Notes under the pieces: generated by a model
The model's database searches: none
What the model saw: only the letters and a program-made list of their open reading frames with translations
Told to the model about the DNA's origin: nothing
Position numbers and translations under genes: made by a program
In this document: piece by piece, positions 4,400 to 61,055 of the stretch
How positions within the stretch are numbered: position 1 is the first letter of the stretch
How the letters are laid out: each line of letters opens with the position of its first letter
Source: Scyliorhinus canicula
Lineage: Eukaryota
NCBI RefSeq assembly: GCF_902713615.1
Contig: NC_052162.1
Location: 114,880,742 to 114,944,741, forward strand
Direction: 5' to 3'
Length of the DNA: 64,000 nucleotides

Positions 4400-5039
4400 T
4401 ATTTATTTTAACACTAATTCATCCTGGTATACTGCTTATCCCCAGTGCTCCTCCCCTGAAGGTGCTGACCCTCTGGGCTTCAGTTTCTCTCTCACCTGTT
4501 GCTCTCCCCAGTGTCACCCAGGTGTCTAAATCTTTACACCTGAAGGTAACAAACTGTTCTGCTCAGGGGGACGTCACAATCTAATCCAGTGACCATCCAG
4601 ATGGACTTTGTGACGTCACCACCGCCCCCAATCCCAGGAGTTTGGAGACTTGGCTCCTGATGAGTAATGGGGTTCACGGCTCCCACAACTCCCCGCGACA
4701 GGTACAGAACTGCGCATGTCCACTGGAGAAGGGCAGCTGCTCACATGCGGAGCAAGGCGTTTCCTATTGGCCAAATAGCCGACGTTTCATGATGTCAAAA
4801 GTGACTTCTGTTGTCCAATGTGAGGCGCCAAATAGCCAATGGAAAGACTGGAGGAAAGAGAGGCGAGGTTGCGCATGTGCGAGGAAAAGCCCACCCCCTG
4901 ACCTTCCTTCTGAGGTGTTGACCAATGGAAAGAGTTAGAACCGGAAGGACTCTTGTCCTCCATCCAATCAGCGCGCGAGCTTTGTGCGAATGAAGATTGA
5001 GTTCACACAGACTGAAACTTCCTCCTGTCTCCAACATCT
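4400..5039 (+). promoter_or_regulatory. ZNF-1 CpG-rich promoter and non-coding exon 1
   Basis: CRE TGACGTCA at 4611; NRF1-like TGCGCATG at 4711 and 4870; CCAAT 4922 - CCGGAAG 4941 - CCAAT 4964; splice donor CT|GTGAGT at 5040. Paralogous modules precede every ZNF gene in the window. Confidence 0.7.
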
Positions 5040-6055
5040 GTGAGTAAAACACTTTCTTTTCTCCCCCTTTCCATTTCTTTTCTCATTCTCACCTTCAATT
5101 GGCCACTTGCAGCAACTGAAGGGAAAGGAAGTGAATCCAGGGAGGGTGCAGACTCTGCAAAGCTTAGCCCAGGTCTCTCTCTCTTAAAGATAAAGACATC
5201 CCTCAGCTTGACACATTTATTTGTCTGGTTAAAAGGATGGTCTCTTTCCCAGTGTTCACAATTAATGGGCTGGTTTCCCCAGGAGATGGCTGGCATGTAA
5301 GGGGACAATAAATGAATATTGGTCAGAGTTATATGTCTAGTTGTTATAAGGTGCAGATTACAAATATTATTTATGGTTCTGTAATAAAGTATATTGATAT
5401 TTCCAGTTGTGTAATAGTGTACTGTAGCTACATTATATATTTGCATTCATCTCTTTCCTCAGGGGGTTGTTGGTCTCTGGAATTCTCTTCCACAGGGACT
5501 AGAGGAGTCTGGGAATCATTGAATATATTCAAGAATGAGTTGGACAGATTTCTGATTGACCAGGGAGTTAAGGGTTATGGGGAACTGGCAGAAGGAGGGA
5601 TTTCTTTACTCGGGGATGTGGTGAAGCTTTGGAATTCTCTACCCTAAAGGACTGTGGAGCTTCAGTCATCCAAATATTTTAAAGGCTGAGATTGATAGGT
5701 TTCGAAATATTGAAGATATCAGGGGATATGGGGATAGTGTGGGAAAACGGTGCTGAGGTAAATCAGCCAGCGATCTCATGAAATGGTTGAGGAGGTTCGA
5801 TGGGCCTAATGGCCGACTGCAGCTCCTATTATGATTTCCCTATCCTGGAGAGGAAGCATGGATCTGTCAATCAGCCTGAATCAGCACTTTCAGCATTAGA
5901 TGCAGCAGAGTGAGAATGGAGGGATACTGTGTGGGATGGAGGTTTACAGTTTTTGGGAATGAGAGGGGGAAAAATGTTCCATAGAAACTAGAAATGTCTG
6001 TTCTGAATTTCTGTCCTGTACTGACAGCGATGACTTTCCCAAAATGTTTTTACAG
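5040..6055 (+). other. ZNF-1 intron 1 (GT..AG), conserved ends with CR1 fragments in the middle
   Basis: GTGAGT at 5040; TTTTTACAG acceptor ending 6055 preceded by a CTGAC branch-like motif; same ends in paralogs. Confidence 0.7.
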
Positions 6056-6410
6056 ACTAGTAGAAGAGGAGGAATTATAGACTGGAATCTCAAAACATCA
6101 TGTCTAAATCTGGCACAGTCTCTTGATTCTTTGGGACACGAATATCATCGGCCTGTGAATCCTGAAGAAATGTTTCACTGCTCTGTCGGCTTCAAAACAT
6201 TTTAAACATTCGTGCGACTTGAAAATCACCGAGACACACACACCAGAGTAGGAGTGTTCCAGAGCACTGACTGTGGAAAGAGCTTTAACCAGTTACACAG
6301 CCTGAAAAAACATCACCATTCACAGCGGGGAGAGACTGTACACATGTTCTGTGTGTGGATGAGGCTTCAACTGATTGTTTAACATGGAGAGATACAAAGA
6401 AACTCAAAAC

Positions 6411-7532
6411 ATGGAGAAACCGTGGAAATGTGGGGATTGTGGGAAGGGATACAGGGCCCCATCAGAGCTGGAAGCTCATCATCGCGTTCACACTGGGGAG
6501 AGGCCGTTCAGCTGCACTCAATGTGGGAAGGGATTCAGTGATTCATCCCACCTGTTGAGGCACCAGCGAGTTCACACGGGGGAGAAGCTGTTCACCTGCT
6601 CTAAGTGTGGGAAGGGATTCAATCATTCATCCACCCTGCAGACACATCAGCGAGTTCACACTGGGGAGAAGCCATTTACTTGCTCTAAGTGTGGAAAGGG
6701 ATTCAGACATTCATCCACCCTGCAGAAACATCAGCGAATTCACACCGGGGAAAGACCATTCACCTGCTCTCAGTGTGGGAAGGGATTCAATCGTTCATCC
6801 ACCCTGCAGACACATCAGCGAGTTCACACTGGGGAGAAGCCATTTACTTGCTCTAAGTGTGGAACGGGATTCAGACATTCATCCACCCTGCAGAAACATC
6901 AGCGAATTCACACCGGGGAAAGACCATTCACCTGCTCTCAGTGTGGGAAGGGATTCACTCAATTATCCAGCCTGCGAACACACCAGCGAGTTCACACTGG
7001 GCAGAGGCCATTCATCTGCTCTCAATGTGGGAAGGGATTCACTCAGTTATCCCATCTGCAGGCACATCTGCGAGTTCACACTGGGGAGAGGCCGTTTACT
7101 TGCTCTCAGTGTGGGAAGGGATTCACTCACTCATCACACCTTCGGGTACACCGGCGAGTTCACACTGGGGAGAGACCGTTCACCTGCTCTCAGTGTGGGA
7201 AGCGGTTCAGTGATTCATCCCATCTGTTGAGACACCAGCGAATTCACACTGGGGAGAGACCATTCTCCTGTCCTCAGTGTGGGAAGGGATTCAGTGATTC
7301 ATCCACCCTCCAGACACATCAGCGAGTTCACACTGGCGAGCGGCCATTTCTATGTTCAGTGTGTGGGAAAGGATTCACTCTGTCATCCATCCTGCTGACA
7401 CACCAGAGAGTTCACACTGGGGACAGGCCATTCATCTGCTCTGAATGTGGGAAGGGATTCATGCATGAACGGAACCTGCGGAAACACCATCAAGTTCACA
7501 TCTTGGAGAGACCATTCACCTGCTCTGAGTAG
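6411..7532 (+). CDS. C2H2 zinc-finger protein ZNF-1, 13 tandem fingers, no effector domain (alternative start ATG 6384)
   Basis: ORF 6375-7532; repeated CxxC..H..H with TGE(K/R)P linkers; start aacATGG at MEKPWKC; two further dead fingers lie after the TAG. Confidence 0.9.
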
Positions 7533-8052
7533 GGGGAGGGATTCACTGATCCATCCCACCTGCAAAGACACTGGCAACTTCACACTGGGTAGAGGCCATT
7601 CACCTGCTCTCCATATGGGAAGGGTTTCCCTGATTCATCGCGCCTGCTGAGACACCAACGTGTTCACAAGTTGGATTCTGCTGTTATTGTTTCTGCTCTC
7701 AATTACACCCAGGACTGCATTTTATTGATTCTGTCAATTGGTCAATGGGGAGACTTGGAGGGTTTCTTTCTGCTGGACTGGCCGGTCTCACAACTTTGCT
7801 TCCAGTGGGCTGATGCTCTTTGTCTTGTTGAGAATACCTGGTTTCAAATTTCACAAAGATCACAGAGTGAAGGGGTGTTTGGAAGTAGAAGATATTTCAT
7901 TTCGACTTCCGGTTGCGGCTATGACCAGCTAAGTCGCACGTTTGGCTGCTCCTGCTACAAAGGTGTTTTCGGGCCGATTGGAGGGCCCCAACGGCGCTGT
8001 AAGGACAAATCCCGGTGGGGGAAGGCTCCCTGAAGAGAACCAGACCAACTTT

Positions 8053-25319: not shown

Positions 25320-26372
25320 TCACTCAATGCCTCCGCTAATCGGAGCAGGTGAATGGCCTCTCCCCGTGTGAACTCGCTGATGTCTCTGCAGGCTGGATGA
25401 ATGTCGGAATCCTTTCCCACAATGAGAGCAGGTGACTGGCTTCTGCCCAGTGTGAATTCGCTGGTGACTCTTCAAGTGGGATAACTGAGTGAATCCCTTC
25501 TCACACTGAGAGCAGATGAACGGCTTCTCCCCAGTGTGAAATCGCTCATGTCTCCACAGGGTGGATGAATGTCTGAATCCCTTCCCACACTGAGAACAGA
25601 TGAACGGCCTCTCCCCTGTGTGAACGCGCTGGTGTATCTTCAGGCTGGATAACTGAGCGAATCCCTTCCCACACTGAGAGCAGGTGAACGGCCTCTCCCC
25701 AGTGTGAATTCGCTGGTGTGTCCGCAGGGTGGATAAATCTCTGAATTCCTTCCCACACTGAGAGCAGGTGAACGGTCTCTCCCCAGTGTGAACTCGCTGG
25801 TGTGCCTGCAGGTGGGGTGCCTGAGTAAATCCTTTCCCACACTGAGAGCAGGTGAATGGCTTCTCCCCAGTGTGAATTCGCTGATGTGACTTCAGGCTAA
25901 ATAACGCAGTGAATTCCTTCCCACACTGAGAGCAGGTGAATGGCTTCTCCCCGGTGTGAACCCGCTGGTGTGTCTTCAGGTTGGATACCTGAGTGAATCC
26001 CTTCCCACACTGAGAGCAGGTGAATGGCTTTTTCCCAGTGTGAACTCGTTGGTGTGACTTCAGGCTAGATAACACAGTGAATCCCTTCTCACACTGAGAG
26101 CAGGTGAACGGTCTCTCCCCAGTATGAATTCGCTGATGTGACTTCAGGGTGGATGAATGTCTGAATCCCTTCTTACACTGAGAGCAGGTAAACGGCTTCT
26201 CCACAGTGTGAACTCTTTCATGTGACTTCAGGCCGGATAATTCAGTGAATCCCTTCCCACACACAGTGCAGGTAAATGGCCTCTCCCCAGTGTGACTGCG
26301 TCGATGAATCTCCAGCTTAGATCGGACTCTGAATCTCTTCCCACAGACTTCACATTTCCACGGTTTCTCCAT
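25320..26372 (-). CDS. C2H2 zinc-finger protein ZNF-2, 12 fingers; a frameshift near 25365 removes two terminal fingers
   Basis: ORF 25320-26408, start aacATGG at 26372 ([10 protein letters not shown]); remnant fingers continue out of frame to HQQVHN* at 25196. Confidence 0.88.
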
Positions 26373-26736: not shown

Positions 26737-29362
26737 CTGTAAAAACAATTTACAAAAGACATCATTGTCAGTAAAGGATAGAAACTCAAAACAGACAATT
26801 TTAATTCCTCTGGAACATTTTATCCCCTCTCACTCTGCAAAGGCTGTAAATCTCCATCCCACACACTCTCCCTCCATTCTCACCCTGCTCCACAATGAGT
26901 GAAGAACTCCCTCCTCATCTCAGCTTTGTCTCCATTTTCCTGCCTGTTTTCCATAACCCTCGACTCCCTGGTCATCAGAAATCTGTCTGGTTGGGAACAA
27001 TGTGATGCGGCGCAGGAGTAGCTGCTTTCCCACAGGTTCTGATGCCACTCACCTAGAATCCATCATTTATCCTGATTGCTCGGCACTCATCTACCTGATC
27101 CTTGAATTAATATTTGTTGTCATGTCTCTGGAAGACATCGGGATTAGGAAAGGTAAGATTAAGAAATCCGTTGATAAAAGAGCGGAGGCAGATTCAGTGG
27201 GGGTGCAGCCGCCTTGTCAACATGGCGGCCTGACCCTTGGGAGATCTCTCGACCCCGCGCTCTCCGGGACTCTCTCGGAGGTGGCGAAGATGATGACTGC
27301 CAACATTCTCCGTGTTATTGACCAGAGGCTGAGTGAGCTGACTCAATATCTCTGAGCTCATGAGGCCGAGCTGCAAAACACCATGAAGAGGCTCATTGAT
27401 CCCGAGGCTGCGAGGGAGACCAGGAAAGTGTAGGATGCGGGAGGGAATATGGTCTTGGACCCGACGGGTGAGAATGGGGTGTTTCGGGACTTCTATAGCA
27501 AGCTGTACCGGTCGGAACCCCCTGCCATGGCGGAGGCAATGAGGCGGAGTTTGGAGGGGTTGGAGTTCCCGAAGGTGGAAGGGGAGCTGGTGGAGGTCCT
27601 GGGGGGCCCCAACTGCGCAGGTGGAAGCTGGTAGAAGCATCCTTCACTTTCCCGGTCTCCCTTGCAGTCTCCTGCTTCCTCAACTAGCATCCTGCACTAG
27701 CATCCTGCTCGCCTTCTCCCTGTACTCATACACCACCCCTTGTACCCTTCACCACCTTTCCCGTAGATAGAAGCCTGAAGGATCTCTGTGTCTATTCGAA
27801 ACCCCGGATATCCGTTATCCCTTCTTCGTTCCCAAATAACAGAGGTCAAGTCTATGCTTTTTGGGAAAGTTCAGTTGAACTTTGTCAGCTTGTGCTACTG
27901 GTAAACTTTATTTGTCAACACAAGATTAGATCAGATTGATTGTCTTTAGTGAATACAGTAGTTGAGTTTTCATTCAATTAAAAATTGTGGTAATTCTTCA
28001 AATTATAATACACAGTATTAAATGACTGAGTGATTTAAAAAAAGAAAGATGGCGATTTAGCCAAAGGAAGTAAAGGAAATAGGTTTCAGAAAGAGATAGA
28101 TAGAGGGACTGGAGGTGATGCAATCGGGCAAGGCCCTGGTCTGGAGGGGTACCTCATGAAATTTTCTGAGAAATTCTCAGGGGTATTGGGGACAGTGCTG
28201 GGAGGGGATTTTAACGAGGCAAGGGAGCTGGGAGTGCTCCCCCAACCTTGTCGCAGGCTTCGATCTCCCTCATTTTGAAGCGGGAAAAGTACCACGAACA
28301 ATGTGAGTCATACAGACCGATCTCCCTGCTAAATGTAGATGCCAAACTGTTGGCTAACGTCTTGGCCTCAAGGATAGAGGATTGTGTCCCTGGGGTGATA
28401 GGGGATGACTAGAGGGGTTTGTGAAGGGGAGGCATCTGGCAGCCAATATCAGGAGGCTACTGAATGTGATCGCGATACCTCCAGAGGGGCGAGAGGTAGA
28501 GGTGGTGGTCGCCATGGATGCAGAGAAGGTCTTTGATTGAGTGGAGTGCGACTATTTGTGGGAGGTTCTGGGGCGGTTTGGATTTGGACAGTGTTTTGTG
28601 GACTGGGTCCAGTTGTTATACCAGACACCAGTATCGTGTGTACAGACAAACCGAGTGAGTTCAGATTATTTGAGGGCAGCATGGTAGCATGGTGGTTATC
28701 ATAAATGCTTCACAGCTCCAGGGTCCCAGGTCCGACTCCCAGCTGGGTCACTGTCTGTGCGGAGTCTGCACGTCCTCCCCATGTGTGCGTGGGTTTCCTC
28801 CGGGTGCTCTGGTTTCCTCCCACAGTCCAAAGATGTGCGGGTTAGGTGGACTGGCCATGCTAAATTGGCCGTAGTGTCCTAAAAAGTAAGGTTAACGGGG
28901 GGGGGGGGGGTTGTTGGGTTACGGGTATAGGGTGGATACGTGGGTTTGAGTAGGGTGATCATTGCTCGACACAACATCGAGGGCCGAAGGGCCTGTTCTG
29001 TGCTGTACTGTTCTATGTTCTATTTCAGGCTGCACCGAGGTACGAGACAGGGGCGACCACTCTCCCTACTGCTGTTTGCCCTGGCTATAGAACCGTTGGT
29101 GATGGCACTGAGAGTGTCAGGGGCTAGTAGGATTGTGGACATTATGAAAGAGACCATCCTTTTAGCCAGACAAATAAATGTGTCAAGCTGAGGGAACAAA
29201 GGATGTCAATGTCTTTAAGAGAGAGAGACCTGGGACAAGCTTTCCAGAGTCTGCACCCTCCCTGGATTCGTTTCCTTTCCCTTCATTTGCTTCAAGTGAC
29301 CAATTGAAGGTGAGAATGAGAAAAGAAATGGAAAGGGGGAGAAAAGAAAGTGTTTTACTCAC
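26737..29362 (-). other. ZNF-2 intron filled with L1 fragments (27000-27640, 28090-29120) and a SINE (28673-29022)
   Basis: Minus-strand GTGAGT donor at 29362 and TTTTTACAG acceptor at 26737; L1 ORF1/ORF2 motifs in between. Confidence 0.7.
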
Positions 29363-29846
29363 AGATGTTGGAGACAGGAGGAGGTTTCAGTCTGTGTGAA
29401 GCTCTTTAGTCCCACGCTCGGATTGGCTGCTGGGCCAGAATCCTTCCGGTACTCCTTTCGTCCTATTGGTCAACACCTCAGCAGAGCGGTCAGGGGTGAG
29501 CTTGCCCTCGAACATGCCCAGCCTCTCCTCTCTCTTGGACATGCGCAGTCCCGGCCTGGGGGGAGAGGCTTCTCACTGGCCGGAGCCATCAGCCGGTTGC
29601 CTGGAAACCTTGTCTGGAGGAAGGGGAACAATAAGTGGGTCGGTCCTTCGCACTGGAACCCTAAGACGTCACCGTGGATTCCTCTGCGTGCGCAGAAAGG
29701 TTGTTGACCAAATGGAAGAGTTGCTGAACCGGAAGGACTCTCTTCCTCCATCCAATCAGCTCCCCCGTTGTCTGAATGCGGAAGCTGGTCAATGAGGAAA
29801 CCTGGGGCCCCACACAGACTGAAACCTCCTCCTGTCTCCAACCTCT
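29363..29846. promoter_or_regulatory. Bidirectional promoter with both exon 1s (ZNF-2 on -, ZNF-3 on +)
   Basis: Inverted copies of the exon-1/donor module; CCAAT-CCGGAAG-CCAAT on each side; RFX X-box GTTGCCTGGAAAC at 29596; NRF1-like ATGCGCA. Confidence 0.75.
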
Positions 29847-30879
29847 GTGAGTAAAACACTTTCTCTTCTCCCCCTTTTCATTTCTTTTCTCATTCTGACC
29901 TTCAGTTGGTCACTCGCAGGAACTGATGGAAAAGGAAGTGAATCCAGGGAGGGTGCAGATTCTGGAAAGCTTGGCCCAGGTCTCTCTCTCTCTTAAAGAC
30001 ATTGACATCCTTTGCTCCCTCAGCTTGACACATTTAGTTGTCTGGCTAAAAGGACGGTCTCTTTCCCAATGTTCACAATTAAAGGGCTGCTTTCCCCAGA
30101 AGATGGCTGACATTTAAGGAGACAATAAATTAATATCAGACAGAGATATGTCTTGTGTTGTTATATGGTACACATTAGATATATTATTTAAGGTTCTGTA
30201 AAAAAGTACATTTATTATTATTTCCAGTTATGTAATATTGTGCTATAGCTATGTTATATATTTCCAGTCATCTCTTCCCTCAGAGGGTTATTAGTCTCTG
30301 GATTTCTCTTCCACAGGGACCAGTGGGGTGTGAGGGTCATTGACTATATTCATGGATGAGGTGGACGGATATTTAATTTAGTTTTTAAACCATTGTTTAA
30401 ACAATGAGTGCAATAGAGTAACAGAAAAAATGGTGGAAAATGGGCACAGAGCAGAACAAGAGATATTGCCAACATAAATACAAGCAACACATTGCAGAAT
30501 TAATTTGGAACAGAGTTTTGAGGGACTTGAGCCTTGAGATGAAACGTCAGATCGATTGAACAACCAATTAACAGGTTAAAATAGTAAGTGGGAAAAGAGG
30601 GTAAGATTATATAAAAACAGAGGATAACAATTCAGTTTGTAAAATATGACAGACTAACCGCATATGAAAATTAATAACACAACATGGATGACATAGAACT
30701 CCTATAGCGCAGAAGGCCATTCACCCCTCAAGTCTGCAGTGAGCCTCAGAAAGAGCACTTCACTAAAGCTCACTCCGCATCTTATTCTCTTAACCCGGTG
30801 CATTGATCATGGTCAAGCCACCTAACCCGAACAGCTTGGACACTAAGGGGCAATTTAGTGTGACCAATCCACTTCAGCA

Positions 30880-32791: not shown

Positions 32792-33487
32792 CTGGAGAAA
32801 CCGTGGAAATGTGGGGACTGTGGGAAAGGATTCAGGGCTCCATCTCAGCTGGAAGCTCATCGGCGCAGTCACACCGGGGAGAGGCCGTTCATCTGCTCTC
32901 AGTGTGAGAAGGGATTCACTACTTCATCGAGCCTGTGGACACACCAGCAAGTTCACATTGGGGAGAGGCTGGTCACTTGCTCTCAGTGTGAGAAGGGATT
33001 CACTACTTTAAAGAGCCTGCAGAAACATCAAAGACTTCACGCTGGGGAGAGGCCATTCACCTGCTCTCAGTGTGAGAAGGGATTCACGACTGCATCAAAC
33101 CTGCAGATACATCAGCGAGTTCACACTGGGGAAAGGCCGTTCACCTGCTCTCAGTGTGAGAAGGGATTCACTACTTCATCGAACCTTCGGAAACACCAGC
33201 GAATTCACACTGGGGAGAGGCCATTCATCTGCGCTCAGTGTGAGAAGGGATTCACTACTTTATCGAACCTGCAGATACACCAGCGAGTTCACACTGGGGA
33301 GAAGCCATTCACCTGTTCTCAGTGTGGGAAGGGATTCACTCAGTTATCCAACCTGCAGAGACACCAGCGAGTTCACAGGGAAGACGGCGTTAACCTGTTC
33401 TTGGTGAGAGAAGGGATTCAGATATCCATACACCCTGCAGGAACACTAGCGAGTTCACACCTGGAAGAAGCCATTCACCTGCTCTGA
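32792..33487 (+). pseudogene. ZNF-3: open frame of 7 intact C2H2 fingers starting at CTG instead of ATG (start-loss pseudogene or CUG-initiated gene)
   Basis: Manual translation (L)[39 protein letters not shown], 231 codons with no ATG; intron 29847-32434; decayed fingers after the frameshift at ~33378. Confidence 0.8.
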
Positions 33488-34544: not shown

Positions 34545-35750
34545 TGACTGGAAAAATATAACATTGATACACAACTATATCACAAAACTAAAAATAATAA
34601 CAAATATGTTTTATTACAGAACCATCAATGATATATCTAATCTGTACTATATAATAACAGTAGACATATCTGTTTCCGATAATTTACTGCCCTTCAATTG
34701 TCAGCCATCTCCTGGGGAAACCAGCCCTTTCATTGTGAACATTGGGAAAGAGACCATTTTAGCCAGACAAATAAATGTGTCAAGCTGAGGAGCAAAGGGC
34801 GTCAATTTCTTTAAGAGAGAGAGACCTGGGCCAAGCTTTGCAGAGTCTGCACCCTCCCTGGATTCACTTCCTTTCCCTTCAGTTGCTGCAAGTGACCAAT
34901 TGAAGGTGAGAATGAGAAAATAAATGGAATGGGGGAGAAAAGAAAGTGTTTTACTCACAGATGTTGGAGACAGGAGGAAGTTTACGTCTGTGTGGAGCTA
35001 AATTAGTCACACAAAGGCTGGAGGCGCAGAGTCCTTCCGGTGTCACCTCTTTCTATTGGTCAAAACCCGAGTGGAATGGTCAGGGGGTGGGCACTCAACT
35101 GCACATGCGCTGTTTCTCCTCTCTCTTGAACATGCGCAGGATCCTGGGCTTGCCGCACGGCGGCTAGTGCCATTTTCCCAGTGCGACGCCATTACTCATC
35201 CAGATCCCAGTCTCCAAACACCTGGGACAGTGTGCAAAAGTGGCGCGGGGCGCGGTGACCCCATCCTAATACAAAGTTCAACTGGGTGCTCACTGGATTT
35301 GTTTGTGACACGCCCTTGTGGGGGGCTGCATGGTAGCACAGTGGTTAACACTGTGGCTTCAGAGCGCCAGGGTCCCAGGTTGATTCCCAGCTTGGGTCAC
35401 TATCTGTGTGGAGTCTGCATATCCCTGTGTCTGAGGGGTTTCCTCCGGGTGCTCCGGTTTCCTCCCATAGTCCAAAGACGTGCAGGTTAGGGGGATTGGC
35501 CATGATAAAGCCACCAAAATGTTTGGAGGGGTTATTGTGTTACGGGGACAGCATTGAAGTTAGGGCTTAATTGGGTCTGTGCAGACTCAATGGGCTGAAT
35601 GGCCTCCTTCTGCACTGTATGTTCTATGTTAACAAAACAGTTTGTTAACTTCAGGTGTAAAGATTTAGACATCTGGGTGACATATTGGGGAGGGCAATAG
35701 GTGAGGATGAAACTTAACCCGGGAGTCAGCATCTTCAGGGGAGGAGAACT
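34545..35750 (-). promoter_or_regulatory. Orphan ZNF promoter + exon 1 + intron start (donor at 34958), split by a V-SINE at 35322-35630
   Basis: Inverted paralog of 4400-5450; no minus-strand ZNF exon immediately downstream. Confidence 0.7.
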
Positions 35751-35899
35751 GGGTGTTGGAGGGTGGGGTAGGGTGGATGGGATAAGGGTGAGGAACTGGG
35801 AGAGTATCTGCGTTTCCTTTGCTGTTTTGGAAATAAACCTGTTCAAGGTCCAACTCGGCTTTAGACCGATTCTTCCTCTGCAGACACTATTTTGAATGA

Positions 35900-37348: not shown

Positions 37349-37760
37349 GAAGGGTGCTGAGATTGCCACATTAAGAGATCAGAATGTGCTAATGGCAGAA
37401 CAAAGGCACATTCTGATCTCTTAATGTGCCACTGTCAACACCCTTCTTGAGTTGGAGATGCCGGCGTTGGACCTTCTTAGTCATTATCACCACCTTTGAC
37501 TTTTTGTCCACGACGTATTTGTCAATCTCCACCTGCCACTGGCCCTCTGTCCAGCCCCACTGCTCCACGCCGCCACCCCTCACAACAGGAGAAATCTCAA
37601 TCTTATTTCCAGTTCCCTCCAGCTTTGACAAAGAGATATCCAGAGTCGAAACGGTTGCTCCATTCTCTCTCCACCAATGCTGGCAGTCCGGTGTGGGTGC
37701 CCAGCATTTTCTGTTTTGTTTCTGATTGAGCATCTGCAGTAATTAGCTTTTATCTTGGGT
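37349..37760. mobile_element. Penelope-type fragment with hairpin
   Basis: Perfect 23-bp inverted repeat 37367-37389/37406-37428; degenerate TTGACAA..GAAAC core; related fragment at 44850-45060 (-). Confidence 0.5.
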
Positions 37761-38660
37761 GCATTTAGGTGTTCCCTGTGTGTGAAGAGATTCACCCAGT
37801 TTTCCAATCTGTTGACACCCAGGTGAGTTCACTCCAGGGAGAGGCTGTTTAAACGTTGTGTGTGTGGTGTCATGCGAGTGTCCCTTGAAGAAAGGTTTTT
37901 GTCTTATCACATGGCTTCAGTGATGTCATTTTGTGTGTGGAGCTTCGCTGTCACTGTCAGGTGTTTGGTCTCAGTTTCATTTCGGAGGGCAGAGGAGGAA
38001 ATAAATGTTTATTCCCGATCTCTCTCTATTTTCATTTTAAATACCTGTTCTAGTAAAAAAAAACATTGCTTGTGGATACCTGCTTTGGTAACTTAAAATA
38101 TATAGTTTTATTTCCGGAAAGAGTTTAAATCTGCTAGTTCAGATTGGATCAAAATTTCAGGAAAAAGACCAGTCCCATTCAAGTGATAATGCAGTGTGCT
38201 GCACCACGCCCTTGAGTAGGGTTTTTTGGTTTATTGGATTTTGTTATTGAATTGGAACAGTTAAAGGGGAAATTCATTAAGTGTTCTACATAGATTACTG
38301 TAGCTGTGTGGCGCCTTTATATTTGTAATTGATAGTTCTTGCTGTTTTTAAGTATATGTGAACTATATTCTTCGAATAAACCTTGTTTTGATTAAGGTGT
38401 CTGGGGAGTCTGTTGAATCACACCTGAGGTGTAGGTTTTTCTGATCATCCTAGCCAAATTCAATATTAAGGTGGTAGATCAGGTTAACTCCATAATATAC
38501 TTTGGAGTTTCCTAAACCCTGGTTCATAACAGTGGAAAGGGAGTCACGGACTCCCTGACAATGTCCTGACACACCAGTGAATTTCTGTTTGAATGTAGGG
38601 GTTGGATTCTGCTGCTGCTGTTAATCACATCCAGGACTGAACCATGTTCACTCTGACAGT
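37758..38660 (+). pseudogene. ZNF remnant (two dead fingers + family 3' UTR) split by a solo LTR
   Basis: FRCSLCVKRFTQFSNLLTPR*VHSRERLFKRCVCG|KGVTDS..; then GGGGTTGGATTCTGCTG..ATCACATCCAGGACTGAACCATG, matching 44581-44640. Confidence 0.7.
37868..38531 (+). mobile_element. Solo LTR (~664 bp)
   Basis: TGTCATG...CATAACA termini, 4-bp TSD GTGG (37864-37867/38532-38535), internal AATAAA. Confidence 0.85.
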
Positions 38661-39899
38661 TGAGGTATTTTCTGTTGTTGTTAATAATCCCTGTAACTCC
38701 TGGAGTTTTAATATTTTGGATGAATTTCAAATAAATTATCTCTCGTGAGTTTTTCAAGTCCTTGATGTCAACGAAAGGAAAAGGTGGGTTTTAAGCAGAG
38801 TGTTGAAGGAGGAGAGAGAAGTCAAGGGAGGGAGGGAATTCCAGAGTTTAGGAACCTGGCAGCTGAAGACTGAAAGAGAGTCAGTCCTGGATTATGGGGG
38901 AGTCGAGTCTCTGGAGCGGAGACTTGAACCCACGACCTTCAGCCTCAAAGGCGAGAGTGTGAGACTGACTGAGGCATGGTGTTCGGGGAAGTGATGTGAA
39001 GTCTCAGTCTCATCCTTTCCCTGTCCTTTACCACATTCTAGGAACAGCAAATCGAGCTGAGAAACTGGGCAGTAACTAAAATGGAAAAGACAAAGGTTAC
39101 GAAAATAATCCTATTACCCAGCGAACAGTGTAATTGTGGAACTCGCTACCATGGGTAGTGGATGAGGTGGATAGTATTGATGTATCTCAGGGGAGACTGG
39201 ATGAAGAGAAGGAGAAGAGTGGTGAGAATGTGGAGCTCGCTGCCACACAGAGTGGTTGAGGTGAACAGTACAGATGTATGTAAGGGGAAGCTGGATAAAC
39301 AGATGAGGAAGAAAGCTGGAGCTTGATGAAGTAAAGTGGAAGGAGTCTCGTGTACAGTATAAATGAAAGGGACTGAATGGCCTGGTTCGGGTGCTGTACA
39401 TTCTGTGTGAAGAACTTGCATCACACAAGATTCCCACCTCAGCCAATGAAATACTTATTAAAAAAACATTTTAACATTTGATGTGTTTAAAACTTTGGTT
39501 GAGACGTGGTGTTTTAACAAAGAAAACATGCTCAAGTTTAGGGTGGGGATCTTAATGTTGAAACAGCACCACACTTATAAATGTAAAAATAGCGAGAATC
39601 AGAGGATAGGGGCTAAAGATCAGGAAATAGCCAAGTTAAAACCTGCCCAGAATGTAGCAGAATGGGCTGAGCAAGCTGATATGGACCAGGGTCTGTACAT
39701 ACTCTGAACTAAAGAGGTTTGTGTACACGCAGATATTGATCCGAAGGGCTTTTTGTATTCACAGACCCTGAAGCAGATAATTCCAAGTTGTCCTGAGGGA
39801 ATTTCAGGTGGTGCTGTTCCTATGTGTTTGCTGTCCTTGTCCTTTGACAGTCAAGGTTATGGGTTTAGAAGGTGATGTCAAAGGAGCACTGGTGAGCTC

Positions 39900-42000: not shown

Positions 42001-42149
42001 CTTTAATAGCACATTTGACTTAATAAAATACGCCAAGGATTTTCCAGGATTATTGTAAAAGAAAGCTTCATGAAGGTTGCCCATGATCGTGATGTGACAC
42101 AAATTCTACATCTCATTCCCCAGATAATCTCTCCTTCCTATTGATTTCA

Positions 42150-42690
42150 ACACTAATTCATCCCATTATCTCCTCCTGCTTTCCCCCAAAATCTCCTCCC
42201 CTGAAGGCGCTGACTCTCGAAATCAGTTTCACACTAATCTATGGTCCTCTCCAATATTTCACCTAGGTGTCTAACATTTACACCTTAAGTTAACAAACTG
42301 TTTTGTTAAGGGGGCGCTACAATCAAATCCACTGACTACCCACATGTACTGTGTGTCAGGGTGGGGGTCATTCCCCCCGCACATTTCATCCCATTCCAAG
42401 GGATTTGGAGACTGGACTCCAGATGCGTAATCGCGGTCATAGCTCCCATAATTCACCGCGGTGAGGAAACCGCTCCATTTGCCGAGCGGGCGGCCCGGAC
42501 TGCGCATATCCCTGAGAGCGATGTGAAGCTGCGCATGTGCATAAAGGTCCCACCCCCTGACCTTTCTGCTGAGGTGTTGACCAATGGGAACAGTTGGAGG
42601 ACCGGAAGGACTCTGGTTCTGAAGGGAAAGGAATGAATCCAGGGAGGGTGCAGACTCTGCAAAGGTTGGCTCAGGTCTGTCGGTAAGTTT
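42150..42690 (+). promoter_or_regulatory. ZNF-4 promoter with deleted canonical exon-1 donor
   Basis: Upstream module as at 4445-4600, TGCGCATGTGC, CCAAT, CCGGAAG, then a direct junction into intron-module sequence at ~42620. Confidence 0.65.
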
Positions 42691-43565
42691 ACGGATTGTG
42701 AGAAAATTGGTGGTGGTAAATAGTGAGGAGGATAGTCTTTGGTTACAGGAGGATAATAATAATCTTTATTATTGACAAAAGTAACTCTGCAACGTCCATC
42801 TAATTCAATTAGAAATTATTGATCATTTCTGCTTGAGGACCTTCATAGGCAGAAAGTTCCAGATCATAATCAATCACTACCTCCTGTATCTTAACCAACT
42901 GAAACAATCCTATACATTAAACACAATTTTAGTCCTGTTACATATTTCTGTTAGGCTGGCAGCCTGCATGAAGATGTCCTGGGCTCTCTGGCCAGGACAG
43001 TAAGCATCGAGCATGGATCTGTCAATCAGCCTGAATCAGCACCTTCAGGAGAATTGGGAGGGTGAATATTAGATACAGCAGAGTGAGAATGGAGGGAGAG
43101 TGTGTGGGATGGAGATTTACAGCTTTTGGGAAATGAGAGAGGACCATAAAAACCAGAATGGTTTGTTCTGAAATTTTTTCCTGTACTGACAGTGATGTCT
43201 TTTGTAAACTCCTTTTAAGGATATCAGAAGAGGAAGAATTACAGACAGACATCTCAAACCAAACCTCTCATCTCGATCTGATAGATTCACTCAATTCACT
43301 GAGACTTGAAAATCATCGGCCTTTGAATTGAGAACGTGAAAGGTTTGTCTGTTGTGCCTGCTTCAGATGGTTTTAACCATCAGTGTGACGGGAAAATCAC
43401 CGAGACACACACATCTGAGTGAGAGTGTTCCAGAGCACTGACTGGGAAGAGCTTTCACCAGTTACACAAACTGAAAATAAACAGCAGGGAGACACCGTAC
43501 ACGAGTTCTGTTTTTGAGCCTTCAACTGATTGTCCAACCTGGAGAGACACAAGGACACCAGCACC

Positions 43566-44576
43566 ATGGAGAAACCATGGAAATGCCAGGACTGTGGGAT
43601 GGGATTTAGATTCCCATCTGTACTGGAAACTCATCGACGCATTCACACTGGAGAAAGGCCATTCACCTGCTCTCAGTGTGGGAAGGGATTCACTAAGTTA
43701 TCCGGCTTGCACAGGCACCAGCCAGTCCACGTTAGGGAGAAGCCATTCACCTGCTCCACATGTGGGAAGGGATTTAGTACTTCATCCGAACTGTATACAC
43801 ACCAACAAATTCACACTGGGGAGAAACCATTCACCCACAGTGAGTGTGGGAAGGGATTTACTCAGGTATCCAATAAGCTGGGCCACACTGTCACTCACAG
43901 CAATGAGAGACCCTTTAAGTGCTCTGACTGTGGGAGCAGCTTCAAACTGTCTCTCAAACTGATGAACCATCAGTGCATTCACACTAGGGAGAGACCGTTC
44001 AGCTGCTCTCACTGTACGAAGAGGTTTCAACACTCGTCCCATCTGCTGACACACCAGCTCCTGCACACCGGAGAGAGGCTGTTCACCTGCTCTCAGTGTG
44101 GAAAGGAATTCACTCTCATAAGCAACCTGCGGAGACACGAGCGAATTCACACTGGGGAGAGGCCATTTACCTGCTCTGATTGTGGGAAAGGATTCACTCG
44201 GATATCCCACCTACAGACACACCAGCGAATTCACAGTGGAGAGAGGCCATTCACCTGCTCTGACTGTGGGACAGGATTCACTCGGTTATCCCACCTGCAG
44301 GCACACCAGCGAGTTCACACTGGGGAGAGGCCATTCACCTGCTCTGAATGTGGGAAGGGATTCACTCAGCTACCCAATCTGCAGGCACACCAGCGAGTTC
44401 ACACTGGGGAGAGGCCATTCACCTGCTCTGAGTGTGGGAAGGGGTTCCCTCTCTTAGCCACGTTGCAGGCACACCAGCGTCTTCACACTGGGGAGAGGCC
44501 ATTCACGTGCACCGTGTGTGGGAAGGGATTCATTCGGCCAACACTTCTGCTGAGACACCAGCAAGTTCACGAGTGA
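43566..44576 (+). CDS. C2H2 zinc-finger protein ZNF-4, 12 finger units (finger 4 has C->H)
   Basis: ORF 43530-44576; accATGG start at MEKPWKCQDC; acceptor AG at 43218-43219. Confidence 0.88.
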   Translation: MEKPWKCQDCGMGFRFPSVLETHRRIHTGERPFTCSQCGKGFTKLSGLHRHQPVHVREKPFTCSTCGKGFSTSSELYTHQQIHTGEKPFTHSECGKGFTQVSNKLGHTVTHSNERPFKCSDCGSSFKLSLKLMNHQCIHTRERPFSCSHCTKRFQHSSHLLTHQLLHTGERLFTCSQCGKEFTLISNLRRHERIHTGERPFTCSDCGKGFTRISHLQTHQRIHSGERPFTCSDCGTGFTRLSHLQAHQRVHTGERPFTCSECGKGFTQLPNLQAHQRVHTGERPFTCSECGKGFPLLATLQAHQRLHTGERPFTCTVCGKGFIRPTLLLRHQQVHE

Positions 44577-50831: not shown

Positions 50832-51758
50832 TCACTTGTGAACTTGTTGATGTCTCAGCAGGTGCGATGAAACACAAAATCCCTTCCCACATTGAGAGCA
50901 GATGAAAGGCCTCTCCCCAGAGTGAACTCGTTGGTGGCTCCGTAGGTGGGCTGGATGACTGAATCCCTTCCCACACTGAGAGCAGGAGAATGGCTTCTCC
51001 CCAGTGTGAACTCGCTGGTGTTTCTGCAGGGTGGATAACAGAGTGAATCCTTTCCCACAGTCTGAGCAGGTGAGTGGCCTCTCCACAGTGTGAAAACGCT
51101 GGTGTGCCAGCAGGCCAGATAATTGAGTATATCCCTTCCCACAATCAGAGCATGTGAATGGCCTCTCCCCAGTGTGAACCCGCTGGTGTGTCTGCAGGGT
51201 GGATAACCGAGAGAATCCCTTGCCACAGTCAGAGCAGGTGAATGGCCTCTCACCAGTGTGAACTTGCTGGTGTCTCTGAAGGGTAGATAACTGAGAGAAT
51301 CCCTTCCCACAGTCAGAGCAGGTGAACGGCCTCTCCCCAGTGTGAACTCTCTGGTGAGAGGTCAGTTCTCGAGAGCTTTTGAAGCCACTCCCACAGTCAG
51401 AGCAATTAAAGGGTCTCTCATTGGTGTGAGTGACACTGTGTCTCCGCAGGTTAGATAAGTGAGAAAATCCCTTTCCACACTGAGAGCAGGTGAACGGCCT
51501 CTCCCCTGTGTGAATTCGTTGGTGGGATATTAGTTCTTGAGAGCTTTTGAAGCCACTCCCACAGTCAGAGCATTTAAAGGGTCTCTCATTGGTGTGAGTG
51601 AAATTGTGTCTCTGCAGGTGAAATAACTGAGTGAATCCCTTCCCACACACGGAGCAGGTGAACGGCCTCTCCCCGGTGTGACTGTGTCGATGGGTTTCAA
51701 GCACAGATGGGAACCTAAATCCCTTCCCACAGTCCCCACATTTCCACCGTTTCTCCAT
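50832..51758 (-). CDS. C2H2 zinc-finger protein ZNF-5, 11 fingers
   Basis: ORF 50832-51794; aacATGG at 51758 ([10 protein letters not shown]); acceptor 51922, donor 54381. Confidence 0.9.
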
Positions 51759-52457
51759 GTTGCTGGTGTCCTTGTGTCTCTCCAAGTCGGACAATCAGTT
51801 AAAGTCTCACACAGGATACGGGAACTTTCTCTCTCCGCTGTGAACGGTGTGATGTTTTTTCAGGCTGTGTAACTGGTTAAAGCTCTTTCCACAGTCAGTT
51901 CACGGGAACACTTCTAATATGCTGTAAATTGAGTTCACAGAAATCATCATGTCAGTATAGGATAGAAATTCAGAACAGACAATTGTAGTTTCTCTGGAAC
52001 ATTTTTTCCCCTCTCATTCCCCAAAGCTGTAAATCTCCATCCCACACACTCTCCCTCCATTCTCACTCTGCTGTATCTAAGATTCACCCTCCCAATTCTC
52101 CTGAAGGTGCTGATTCAGGCTGATTGACAGATCCCTGTTCACTGCTTCCTGTCCTGGACACAGAGACTGAAAATCTCCATGCAGCTGCCAGACAGATATA
52201 TGTCTATGTTACTGGACTAAACATGTTTTAATGTTTCCGATTGTTCCAGTTAGTTAAGATACAGGGGGTTGTGACTGATCATGTTCTTGAACTTGCTGCC
52301 TATGAGGGGAGTCAAGCAGAGATGATTAATAATTTCTAAATGAAATTGGATGGGTACTGCAGGGTTACAGAATGGGACCCACTCAAGACTGACAATTGCT
52401 CAAGGAGTTGGCCTCAATGCAAAATGTCCAATGGTCTCCTTCTCTTCTGTTATAAAT

Positions 52458-52685
52458 TTTTGTTTTTTTAAATTTAGAATACCCAATCCATTTTTTCAAA
52501 TTAAGCGGAAATTTAGCGTGTTCAATCCACCTACCCTGCACACCTTTGGGTTGTGGGGGTGAAACCCACGCAAACATGGGGAGAACGTGCAAACTCCACA
52601 CGGACAGTGACCCAGAGCCAGGATCGAACCTGGGACCTCGGCTCCATGAGGCTGCAGTGTTAATCACTGCATCACCGTGCTGCCC
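52458..52685 (-). mobile_element. V-SINE short form with 15-bp TSD
   Basis: TCTTCTGTTATAAAT at 52443-52457 and 52686-52700. Confidence 0.9.
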
Positions 52686-52859
52686 TCTTCTGTTATAAAT
52701 CTGACTGGAAATATATAACGTAGCTACAGTACTAGACAAGAATAATTAATGTACTTTATTTCATAACTATCAGTAATATATCTAATCTGTAGCATATAAC
52801 ACACGGTGAGACAAGTGGTTTGCACTACTGCCTCACAGCATGAGGGAGCTGCACCAGCC

Positions 52860-54320
52860 ATCAAGCACATATGAATTCCAATCACTTGGTCCAGAGCCTT
52901 TTATGCTATGGCCTATCAAGTGCTCAGCTCAATGCTTCTTCAATGTTGTGAGAGTTCCCGCCTCTGCCACACTTTCAGGCAGTGAGTTCCAGATTCCCAC
53001 TACCCTCTGGGTGAAAATGTTTTTCCTCAAAACCTCATTAAATCCCCTGCCCCTTACCTTGAATTTCTGCCCACTGTTTACTGACCTGTCAACTAAGGGG
53101 AAAGCTTTCTTCCCATCTACTCTATCTATGGCCTTCATAAACCTGTGCTACTGTGCCCCCACACCACATATCCCCTCAGCCTCCTCTGCTCCCAGGAAAC
53201 ACCTAACCAGGGTCTCTTCACGCTGAAACGCCCAGGCAACATGCTTATGAATCTCCTCTGCATCCTCTCCAGTGCAATCACATCCTTCCTCTAGCGTGGC
53301 AACCAGAACCGCACTCAGTACTCCAGCTATGACTTAACAAGTGTTTTATACAGCTCCATTGTAACCTCAGTGCTCTTAAATTCTATACTTCAGCTGATAA
53401 AAGTATCTCATATCCCATCTTCACCACCTTATCTACCTTCCCTTCTAACTTCAGGGATCTATGGACAGGCACATGAAGGTCCCCCTGACCCTCTGTACTT
53501 TCTAGGGTCCTACCATTCATTGTATATTCACTTGCTTTTTCATCCTCACAAAATGCATTGCCTACTTTTCAGGATTAAATTCCATTTGCCACTGTTCTGT
53601 CTATATAACCTTTAATCTTTCCTCCTCACTACTTATCATACAACCACGTTTTGTATCATCTGCAAACTTACTTGATCATACCTCCTCTATTCACATCCAG
53701 ATCATTAATTTACACTACAAGCAGCAAAGGACCCAGCACTGATCCACGTGGAACACCACTGGACACGGGCTTCCAGTCACAAAAACAACGTTCAACCATC
53801 ACCCTCTGCTTCCTGCTACAATGTCAATTCTAGATCCAATTTGCCAATTGCTGTGGATCCCATGGGCTCTTACCTCATTGACCAGTCTCCCATGTGAGTC
53901 CTTGTCAAATGCTTCACTGAAGTCCCTGTAGTCTACATGAACTGTACTACCGTTAGCTACACACTGAGACAGCTCCTGAAAAAACTCAAGTCAAATTTGT
54001 GACACATGACCTCCCCTGACAAAACCATGCTGATTATCCTTCATCAATCCTTATCTCACCAAGTGAAGATCAATTCTGGTCCGCAGAATTTTTTTCAGAA
54101 GTTTCCCTACCACTGAGGTTAGGCTCACTGGCTTGAAATTTCGGTTTTTTCCCTACTTCATTTCCTGAATAATGGAACCAGATTATCTGTCCTCCAGTCC
54201 TCCAGCGCCGCCGCTCCTGTGACCAGAGAAGATTTGAAAATTGTCAGAGCCTCTGCAATCTCCTCCCCTGCCTTCCACAGCAGCCTGGGATATATCTCAT
54301 CTGGACCTGGGGTTTTAAAC
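52860..54320 (-). mobile_element. CR1 LINE fragment in the ZNF-5 intron
   Basis: RKNIFTQRVVGIWNSLP; RT-region motifs. Confidence 0.8.
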
Positions 54321-54381
54321 AATTGAAGGTCAGAATGAGTAAAGAAATGGGAACGGGGAGAAAATAAAATGTTTTACTCAC

Positions 54382-54932
54382 AGATGTTGGGGACAGGAGG
54401 AAGTTTGAGTCTGTGTGAAGCTCAATCTTCACTCCGAGACAGAAGCAGCAGCTTTGCTGGGCAGAGAGTGGAGGAAGCTCCGGCAACCGGGAGATTGTTC
54501 TCAATGGGAGACCGTGCTGGGAAGTCTTTGTGACGTCCAATGACGACGTGCCTGAATCATCCAATAACAATTAGTCTACTGCACCCTGATGTCTCCGAGT
54601 TCCAGTACGAAGGCCGGGCGCGGACACGGGAACCCCGCCCCCACCGATTGTGACCCCTCTTCCTGCACCTCCTCCAGACAAGGTTTCCTGGCAACCGGCT
54701 GATACTCCGGCCAGAGTGAGATCTCTCACTCCATCCCGGCCTGGGACTGCGCATGTCCAAGGGGAGGGGAAGTTGCAGAAGAGAACCCATCCCTTGAACT
54801 TCCTGCTGAGATGTTGACCAATGGGAATATGCTGACAACCGGAAGGACTTTGGTGTTCCAACCAATCGAAGCTTTGTGTTAATGAAGATTGAGCTTCACA
54901 CAGACGGACACGTCCTCCTGTCTTCAACATCT
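54382..54932. promoter_or_regulatory. Second bidirectional promoter (ZNF-5 on -, ZNF-6 on +)
   Basis: Exon-1 modules in both directions; X-box GTTTCCTGGCAAC at 54683, TGCGCATG, CCAAT 54818 - CCGGAAG - CCAAT 54862; donor GTGAGT at 54933. Confidence 0.75.
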
Positions 54933-59718: not shown

Positions 59719-60309
59719 ATGGAGAGACCGTGGAAATGTGAGGACTGTGGGAAGGGATTCAGATTCCCATCAGAGCTGGCGATTCATCGACGCATTCACA
59801 CTGGGGAGAGACCATTCACCTGCTCTCAGTGTGGGAAGGGATTCACTGAGTTATCCAACCTGCGGAAACACCACCGAGTTCATACTGGCGAGAAACCATT
59901 TACCTGCTCTCAGTGTGAGAAGGGATTCACTCAGTTATCCAACCTGCAGACACACCAGCGAGTTCACACTGGGGAGAAACCATTTACCTGCTCTCAGTGT
60001 GGGAAAGGATTCAGTAATTTATCCCACTTGCAGATACACTGGCGAGTTCACACTGGGGAGAAGCCATTCACCTGCTGTCAGTGTGGGAAGGGATTCAGTG
60101 AATCATCCAGCCTGAGGGTGCACCAACGTGCTCACACAGGAGAGAAGCCATTCACCTGCTCTTTGTGTGGGAAGGCATTCAGTAGATCATCCAACCTGCG
60201 GATACACGAGAGAGTTCACACCGGGGACAGACCATACACCTGCTCCCACTGTACGATGGCATTCGGTGATCCATCCGCCCTGCGGAGACACCAACAAGTT
60301 CACAAGTGA
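59719..60309 (+). CDS. C2H2 zinc-finger protein ZNF-6, 7 fingers
   Basis: ORF 59683-60309; aacATGG at 59719 (MERPWKCEDC); intron 54933-59354. Confidence 0.9.
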   Translation: MERPWKCEDCGKGFRFPSELAIHRRIHTGERPFTCSQCGKGFTELSNLRKHHRVHTGEKPFTCSQCEKGFTQLSNLQTHQRVHTGEKPFTCSQCGKGFSNLSHLQIHWRVHTGEKPFTCCQCGKGFSESSSLRVHQRAHTGEKPFTCSLCGKAFSRSSNLRIHERVHTGDRPYTCSHCTMAFGDPSALRRHQQVHK

Positions 60310-60357
60310 TTAAAGGGGTCGATTCTGCTGTTATTATTTCTGTTCTCAATTACATCA

Positions 60358-61055
60358 AGGGCTGGTGGCACAGTGGTTCGATCCCGGCCCCGGGTCACTG
60401 TCCGTGTGGAGTTTGCACATTTTCCCCATGTCTGCGCGGGCCTCCTCCACAAACCAAAGATGTGCCGTGTAGGTGGATTGGCTATGCTAAATTGCCCCTC
60501 AATTTGGGGGAAAAAAAGAATTGGGTACTTTAAATTAAAAACAATTACATCCAGGGCTGCATTTTGTTCTGTCTGACATTTGGTCAATGGGGATGGTTAG
60601 AGGGTTTCTTTTTGCTCGACTGGCTGGTGTCGCGACTTTACCTCCAGTGGGCTGATGCTCTTTGAGCCTTGATGCAAATACCTGGTTTAAAATTTCACAA
60701 GGATCACAGGGTGAAAGGGTGTTTGGAAGTTTTTTTCAATACATTTAGAGTACGCACAGACAGTGACCCGGGGCCGGGACAGAGTGTTTGGAAGTTAGAA
60801 GATATTTAGTTTGCATTTCTGGGGGCAGCATGGTGGCACAGTGGTTAGCACTTCTGCCTCAAGGCCCGAGGACCCGGGTTCGATTCCAGCCCCGGGTCAC
60901 TGTCCGTGTGGAGTTTGCACATTCTCCCCGTGTCTGCATAGGTTTCACCCCCACAACCCAAAGATGTGCAGGTTAGGTGGATTGGCCACACTAAATTGCC
61001 CCTTAATTAGAAAAAAATAGTTGGGTATTCTAAATTTATTTTAAAAGAAAAAAAA
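60358..61055. mobile_element. Three V-SINE insertions in the ZNF-6 3' UTR
   Basis: 60358-60540 (TSD CAATTACATC.AGGGCTG); ~60733-60783 (TSD GTGTTTGGAAGTT); 60822-61055. Confidence 0.8.

Follow-up and report, generated by a model that had tools for sequence, protein, structure and literature searches.

A candidate family of fingers-only Krüppel-type zinc-finger genes clustered in a repeat-rich region of the Scyliorhinus canicula genome

To our knowledge, KRAB-type zinc-finger (ZNF) genes are absent outside coelacanth, lungfish and tetrapods. Poly-ZNF expansions that are specific to one lineage and follow its transposon load occur throughout the animals; we know of none whose mechanism is understood unless it has an effector domain, KRAB or FiNZ. 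In metazoans the number of ZNF genes follows that of retroelement copies, and the FiNZ-ZNF genes of cyprinid fishes repress long terminal repeat (LTR) elements at genome activation (PMC10547256). Cartilaginous fishes are not discussed in the main text of that paper, and our literature search found no paper on shark poly-ZNF clusters. Here we describe a stretch of 64,000 nucleotides from the shark Scyliorhinus canicula (contig NC_052162.1, positions 114,880,742 to 114,944,741; hereafter the window), which carries six units with arrays of C2H2 fingers, designated U1 to U6, and two remnants of such units. We consider it reasonably probable that they form a local cluster within a multigene family of Krüppel-type C2H2 genes that extends across sharks and encodes fingers alone. 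The anatomy of the units, their homology, the selection acting on the fingers and their age relative to another shark are presented in turn.

The plan of the units and their predicted products

A regular-expression scan for C2H2 fingers, combined with Tandem Repeats Finder, identified six arrays with an 84-nt period in the window. The 63 fingers matched by the expression are confined to six blocks, with almost none elsewhere. From U1 to U6 the arrays comprise 13, 12, 7, 11 (plus one degenerate), 11 and 7 fingers, all built as tandem C-x2-C-x12-H-x3-H units joined by TGE(K/R)P linkers, the hallmarks of Krüppel-type C2H2 proteins. BLAST comparison of the U1 flanks with the window, complemented by three alignments, showed that the arrays are embedded in a common order of elements: a CCAAT/ETS promoter, a short exon 1, an intron, a leader of about 360 nt made of dead fingers, the array itself and a 3′ flank of about 400 nt. 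The terms exon 1, 5′ untranslated region (UTR) and 3′ UTR designate here parts recognised by conservation among the paralogs and by the splice consensus, from which a two-exon transcript is predicted.

The promoter module, CCAAT...CCGGAAGGAYT, consists of GCGCATGTGC, a CCAAT box, CCGGAAGGACT and a second CCAAT. It is present in six copies where none is expected by chance, at U1, U2, U3, U4, U6 and a remnant devoid of finger exon (R35k). The end of exon 1 with its donor, CATCTG|GTGAGT, likewise occurs six times against an expectation of zero, at U1, U2, U3, U5, U6 and R35k. The intron is conserved at both ends, over its first 500 nt or so and its last 270 nt or so, and the branch point TACTGAC followed by the acceptor TTTTTACAG|G is found in all six units, again with no chance match expected. 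In U2, U3 and U5, an AATAAA signal lies about 415 nt past the stop codon, within the conserved 3′ flank. For the leader and the 3′ flank, too, the number of matches expected by chance is zero. Three pairs are arranged head to head: U2/U3, U5/U6 and R35k/U4. The preliminary description of this DNA had reported six units and two remnants built on one blueprint; the arrays and the shared modules bear this out. The uniformity of the blueprint is, however, incomplete, as the motif scan of the window found neither a CCAAT/ETS module belonging to U5 nor an exon-1 end with donor for U4. Altogether, sequence conservation supports the view that the units are paralogs of one cassette. Because they retain an intron with conserved ends, and because promoter, exon 1 and finger exon follow one another in constant order and orientation, a retrocopy or a cassette borne by a mobile element was ruled out.

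Translated in the same frame as the live fingers, the leader gives three dead ones. All six units have an in-frame TGA here, and no frame of any leader has fewer than two stops. In five of the six units, and in a related locus of Heptranchias perlo (see below), the in-frame stop nearest to the start codon is a TGA at codon −13; U3 has a further stop at codon −7. The beginning of the first fossil finger (MFVCSVCG...) coincides with an upstream ATG (context GAAATGT) at about −243, which opens an upstream open reading frame (uORF) of 11 codons (MF[VH][CF]SV[GR]F[KR][TR]F-stop) in U1, U2 and U3 and a longer one in U6 and Heptranchias; comparison of the six leaders and the Heptranchias one revealed no uORF in U4 and U5. 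In every unit except U3, where CTG takes its place, the main start is an ATG that has A at −3 and G at +4. U1 carries an additional in-frame ATG nine codons upstream. The MEKPWKC start initially ascribed to all units is exact in U1, U2 and U4 only; U5 has MEKRWKC, U6 MERPWKC and U3 LEKPWKC, giving the general motif M-E-K/R-P/R-W-K-C. It leads into an atypical, conserved first finger (EKPWKC...xPSxLExH), distinguished by a tryptophan in the first linker and a proline at helix position +1. The arrays share a conserved terminal finger, ...LLRHQQVH-stop.

The predicted products match only C2H2-type Pfam families (PF00096 at 1.4e-81 and PF13465 at 4.3e-98 for U1; 2e-64 and 1e-79, respectively, for U5). 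The ten longest conserved upstream open reading frames (ORFs) yielded only weak C2H2 remnants in Pfam. A tblastn search of the window with about 300 N-termini of ZNF proteins, many bearing KRAB and some SCAN or SET, found nothing credible for these domains outside the arrays. Hence, neither the upstream ORFs, nor the tblastn search, nor the closed leaders disclosed an upstream coding exon with an N-terminal KRAB domain (PF01352); SCAN and SET gave no match in the tblastn set or in Pfam, and BTB gave none by Pfam in the ORFs submitted. The alignment of the units showed no conserved ATG or reading frame in the putative exon 1. With such an exon 1, and a predicted ORF opening at the first finger, a FiNZ-type upstream peptide was not found either, although no direct comparison with a FiNZ model was made. 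These results support the conclusion that the predicted products are fingers only, as the preliminary description had stated in naming KRAB, SCAN and BTB, and an upstream coding exon for a known effector domain, which would have contradicted it, was looked for and not found in the window.

Relatives in other sharks, age of the copies and array evolution

When the first 40 residues of U1 were used as query, shark proteins ranked first. Relatives were recovered from Pristiophorus japonicus, Mustelus asterias (83% identity), Heptranchias perlo and Heterodontus francisci, which represent four shark orders. No ray or chimaera figured among the close relatives, so that the chondrichthyan scope originally proposed is supported for sharks only. 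The Pristiophorus and Mustelus relatives also start with MEKPWKC; those of Heptranchias and Heterodontus read TTEKPWKC behind doubtful upstream exons and have an ACG-type codon at the position of the ATG. The non-finger parts of four annotated shark gene models contain no Pfam domain. Several public models look chimeric (Mustelus P0122; Heptranchias P0123, locus L001 10001-16672; Heterodontus P0130). The Mustelus model runs from the fingers into the reverse-transcriptase tail of a long interspersed element (LINE), a tail that matches LINE 3′ ends in the window, and the Heptranchias and Heterodontus models have domain-less upstream exons grafted on. Other searches were less informative. With the whole U1 protein as query, generic mammalian and frog KRAB-ZNFs dominated, saying nothing about close relatives. 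A HMMER search of 1.84 billion representatives with a 53-residue piece of the U6 dead fingers was dominated by the summed scores of giant multi-finger proteins and did not reveal the N-terminal context of intact versions, and no candidate was obtained from a region search whose query, the U4 ORF, took in the residues separating the TGA from the ATG.

The comparison at the DNA level across species was made with one Heptranchias perlo locus (L001). Its alignment with the units starts about 150 nt ahead of the acceptor, covers the dead fingers, the TGA, the array and the terminal finger, and continues into the 3′ flank. In the Heptranchias leader the three dead fingers share one frame, which has two stops and stays open between the acceptor and the first of them, thus showing how the leader arose. 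Non-coding distances range from 0.13 to 0.21 between units and from 0.15 to 0.19 between the units and Heptranchias, and the tree is star-like. Since the copies are as far from each other as from the other shark, the duplication burst dates from roughly the time when these shark lineages separated, unless the copies evolve extremely slowly. The cluster therefore does not fit the idea of a recent amplification through a transposon-dense region: the units differ by 13-21% in non-coding sequence, as much as they do from Heptranchias, and most of the insertions in their introns are unit-specific and thus postdate the duplications. The alternating finger type shared by U4 and U5 with Heptranchias and Pristiophorus points to old subfamilies. 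We also considered whether head-to-head pairs had been copied as two-gene units, which would separate a minus from a plus class; the star-like tree speaks against this, U2/U3 being exceptional with arms 92-94% alike. In that pair, the arms, made up of promoter, exon-1 and intron sequence, show 92-94% complementarity against 13-17% divergence over the rest of the units, which points to gene conversion inside the palindrome or to an inverted duplication of later date.

Variability in the fingers is concentrated in the recognition helix. Entropy peaks at helix position −1 (3.3 bits) and reaches 2.7-2.9 bits at +3, +5 and +6, falling to zero at the zinc ligands and the core leucine; at the scaffold positions occupied by Cys, His, Phe and Leu there is little or no variation. 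The ratio of nonsynonymous to synonymous substitution rates (dN/dS, omega), computed for 46 nearest-neighbour finger pairs, was 0.97 at helix positions −1, +2, +3 and +6, compared with 0.31 outside the helix. Over all pairs, contact-site omega was 1.08, and the scaffold value lay between 0.27 and 0.31 across pair sets; the pairs are not independent of one another. An omega of about 0.3 indicates that the scaffold was retained as protein by purifying selection, and the contact residues evolve about neutrally. Helix residues had been said to vary freely; positions −1, +3, +5 and +6 are indeed variable, but contact-site omega on the fingers of the window (0.97-1.08), though raised relative to the scaffold, does not exceed 1 in a manner indicative of positive selection.

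Finger number varies from 7 to 13, as first described. The nearest relative of a finger lies in its own array for 25 of 61 fingers, where 9.9 are expected, and fingers 3-6 of U1 form an in-frame two-finger duplication with 97-98% identity; internal tandem duplication thus accounts for the range. In the nearest-neighbour test, first fingers pair with other first fingers throughout. Helix identity amounts to 50% among first fingers and 44% among last fingers, compared to 28% among inner ones.

Insertions, surrounding repeats and coordinates

At least 16.6 kb of the window (26%) is LINE-derived at the protein level. The LINE content includes one full-length L1, several L1 fragments, seven CR1/L2-like 3′ ends and another LINE at 61793-63707. 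The full-length L1, which interrupts the 3′ flank of U1, has both ORFs open: ORF1 (7942-8898, 318 aa) and ORF2 (9246-13463, 1405 aa), the latter with an APE endonuclease (PF03372, 7.2e-15) and a reverse transcriptase (PF00078, 7.1e-40). It is flanked by the 14-nt direct repeat AGATATTTCATTTC and ends with AATAAA and a poly-A run (14341-14350). This L1 looks young and is possibly active. The assembly gap, a run of N at 13854-14084, falls inside a poly-G/A tract of its 3′ UTR that extends from 13492 to 13853 and continues past the gap; this G-rich tract, more than 360 nt long, is what broke the assembly. The homology of the U1 3′ flank stops at about 7915 and resumes at 14365. As the tract is found on both sides of the gap, the direct repeats flank the element and U1 homology resumes beyond it, the two sides of the gap belong to one insertion and the ZNF parts are untouched. 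No relevant reading frame spans the gap, and the ORFs listed across it are artefacts of the G and N runs.

The LINE at 61793-63707 (plus strand) has two overlapping open frames, of 341 and 300 aa, the second carrying a reverse transcriptase and reaching the end of the window; their 14-nt overlap suggests a frameshifted ORF or one read by programmed shift. A repeat of about 200 nt resembling a short interspersed element (SINE) is present in more than 20 copies (for example, 3786-4380) in both orientations, often as inverted pairs. The ZNF units are thus seen in company with LINE and SINE copies. Between U4 and U5, ARAGORN and Rfam (40 bits) call a tRNA-Ser with anticodon UGA at 47804-47890 (plus strand), which may be a tRNA gene or the head of a SINE. 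Finally, transposon-derived DNA contains, at 17458-17721 and 1012-1110, a G/T-rich minisatellite (units of about 25 and 50 nt, 5-9 copies) and a two-copy tandem repeat of 48 nt. The coordinates of the units and of the L1 are given in Table 1.

Table 1. Features of the six units, the two remnants and the full-length L1 (positions counted from the first nucleotide of the window)
Feature	Position	Strand	Remarks
U1 promoter and putative non-coding exon 1	4871..5040	+	GCGCATGTGC, CCAAT at 4918, ETS-type CCGGAAG at 4940, second CCAAT; donor GT at 5041
U1 intron 1	5041..6055	+	shortest, near-ancestral; branch point TACTGAC, acceptor TTTTACAG
U1 leader, three dead fingers	6056..6410	+	11-codon uORF at −241; in-frame TGA at codon −13; additional in-frame ATG at 6384
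U1 coding array, 13 fingers	6411..7532	+	premature stop removes last two ancestral fingers (dead copies 7533-7668)
Full-length L1	7904..14350	+	inserted in U1 3′ flank; target-site duplication 7890-7903 / 14351-14364
U2 coding array, 12 fingers	25320..26372	-	frameshift; ancestral last finger (25202-25264) out of frame
U2 leader	26373-26736	-	
U2 intron	26737-29361	-	contains antisense L1 fragment 27404-29131
U2 exon 1 and promoter	29362-29546	-	
U2/U3 head-to-head promoter region	29132..30079		inverted-repeat arms 29132-29398 and 29811-30079, 92-94% complementary
U3 promoter and exon 1	from 29704	+	exon 1 ends at 29847
U3 intron	29848-32434	+	
U3 leader, dead fingers	32435-32791	+	
U3 array, 7 fingers	32792..33487	+	CTG replaces ATG; frameshifted tail
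Remnant R35k	34545..35753	-	promoter module, exon 1, donor, 5′ part of intron; without finger exon
Second remnant	~37670..38700	+	one decayed finger (~37761-37850); family 3′-flank motif (~38560-38662)
U4 upstream region	42131..43565	+	promoter module 42531-42612; exon 1 and donor deleted
U4 exon 2	from 43220	+	weakened acceptor; leader without uORF
U4 coding array, 11 fingers plus one with first Cys lost	43566..44576	+	ancestral stop retained
U5 coding array, 11 fingers	50832..51758	-	start MEKRWKC; ancestral last finger and stop intact
U5 leader, intron and exon 1	51759..54434	-	~200 nt of leader deleted; intron with LINE-tail and SINE insertions; exon ends at 54381
U6 promoter and exon 1	from 54749	+	exon 1 ends at 54933
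U6 intron		+	4.4 kb, with LINE fragments
U6 leader	59355-59718	+	
U6 coding array, 7 fingers	59719..60309	+	start MERPWKC; ancestral stop
U6 3′ flank	to ~60730	+	interrupted by SINE-like insert 60375-60529

Explanations and comparison with known systems

If the cluster belongs to a shark-wide family of fingers-only genes, its workings may be pictured as follows. An NF-Y/ETS-type promoter, often shared head to head with a neighbour, would drive the short non-coding exon 1, to be spliced to a single large exon that opens with the three fossil fingers, a leader sealed by stops. Translation would start at the strong-context ATG before the atypical first finger and end right after the conserved last finger. 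The family would owe its growth to an old burst of segmental and inverted duplications. Its arrays would have been remodelled through tandem duplication of one- or two-finger blocks and free substitution at the DNA-contact residues, with the scaffold kept by purifying selection, and copies would die through stops, frameshifts, loss of the start or deletion of the promoter or exon 1, in a process of birth and death. The products would presumably bind DNA in a sequence-specific manner. By analogy with the described systems, their most likely targets would be repeat or transposon DNA, with a silencing partner recruited by the fingers themselves.

Several observations weigh against this picture. 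Cross-species support is limited to exon 2, because the 15 kb preceding the Heptranchias copy yielded no promoter/exon-1 module. The six predicted products, along with the longer U1 variant, have no exact match in a collection of 15 billion proteins, and therefore no public annotation backs the exact reading frames. A contact-site omega of about 1 fits relaxed constraint as well as diversifying selection. Lastly, four of the six units carry lesions, only U5 and U6 being fully canonical.

The last point bears on the first alternative, namely that the locus is a graveyard of decaying copies from a once active family, in which the constraint reflects past function and no unit among the six yields a functional protein today. 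We regard this as unlikely. In its favour, a stop truncates the U1 array by two fingers, and the 6.4-kb L1 in the U1 3′ flank separates it from the region of the poly-A signal. The tails of U2 and U3 are frameshifted and U3 has no ATG, so that it is probably a pseudogene or else uses a non-AUG start. U4 has lost exon 1, the donor and the first cysteine of one finger, U5 is missing the CCAAT/ETS module and about 200 nt of leader, and public protein collections contain no exact product. Against this, U5 and U6, the only two units to hold the full ancestral frame, retain start, all fingers, ancestral stop and splice sites. Moreover, the frames of 7-13 fingers, 0.6-1.1 kb long, have stayed open although the units differ by 13-21% in non-coding sequence, the scaffold omega is 0.3, and the in-frame duplication in U1 is recent. 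The cluster looks like the product of birth-and-death evolution rather than like six working genes.

Distinctly unlikely, in our estimate, is a second alternative, in which the products are ordinary regulatory or chromatin-architecture factors, binding promoters, satellites or insulators, and lie among transposons merely because the region is gene-poor and tolerant of repeats. Fingers-only poly-ZNF proteins without known transposon targets occur in many animals. The plan of the units is old and conserved across shark orders, unlike the fast turnover of an arms race, and contact-site omega is not above 1. On the other side stand the high copy number, the diversity of the helices and the continued remodelling of the arrays, as well as the relationship between ZNF and retroelement copy numbers in metazoans (PMC10547256).

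A bolder version of the preferred reading, that of a shark-wide family of fingers-only genes, would have sharks run genome-wide transposon recognition by such proteins, with the first and last fingers as a partner-recruiting module and the leader, with its uORF and TGA, as a conserved device of translational control, retained from a time before the two shark superorders separated; we think this improbable. Hardly credible is the supply of an effector domain after all, whether from an upstream coding exon that escaped recognition, by reading through the TGA or by splicing to a downstream partner exon: the Heptranchias leader, open from the acceptor to its first stop, allows for an ancestor with upstream coding sequence, yet the leaders have at least two stops per frame, exon 1 has no conserved ATG or frame, no Pfam effector domain was found in upstream ORFs or in the non-finger parts of the four shark models, the search of the 64 kb gave no KRAB, SCAN or SET hit, and the 3′ flanks show scattered stops in all units together with the conserved AATAAA.

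The value of the locus lies mostly in annotation. Promoter module, splice sites, sealed leader, start and terminal finger provide a template that would allow the family to be annotated correctly in other sharks, whose models are often chimeric with transposon sequence. More generally, a large shark family with a defined plan and no effector domain would offer a clean case for studying how fingers-only proteins act. It raises the questions of whether particular fingers recruit partners and whether the dead-finger leader and its uORF serve as a regulatory device.

Among the described systems, the KRAB-ZNF clusters of tetrapods and coelacanth (KZFPs) resemble the shark units in being clustered duplicates with all fingers in one large exon, in changing finger number by internal duplication, in varying at helix positions −1, +3 and +6, and in undergoing birth and death in repeat-rich regions. 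Unlike KZFPs, the shark units have no KRAB exon; their exon 1 is non-coding and their leader is sealed by stops, leaving no evident route to TRIM28-type co-repressors. They are also old, with 13-21% non-coding divergence between paralogs, whereas KZFPs expanded recently. The cyprinid FiNZ-ZNF genes, for which a repressor role has been proposed, likewise represent a poly-ZNF expansion in a fish lineage, with a two-exon plan and a location in transposon-rich DNA (PMC10547256). There, however, the upstream exon encodes a 28-residue acidic N-terminal domain, where the shark one encodes nothing, and function has been examined by morpholino knock-down (Wells et al. 2023, PMC10547256), while the shark family is described here from its sequence. 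The analogy to the KRAB and FiNZ systems nonetheless seems reasonable.

In domain content, the units also resemble OZF/ZNF146-like, "ZFP2-like" and "gastrula zinc finger XlCGF-like" proteins, which, like the predicted shark products, consist solely of tandem C2H2 fingers with TGEKP-type linkers; shark relatives P0121, P0122, P0123 and P0130 bear such similarity-based names. The shark family would be apparently undescribed yet routinely annotated, and a fairly ordinary lineage-specific one. What it adds to other fingers-only proteins is the fossil-finger leader with its fixed TGA, the EKPWKC linker, the proline at helix position +1 and the conserved terminal finger.

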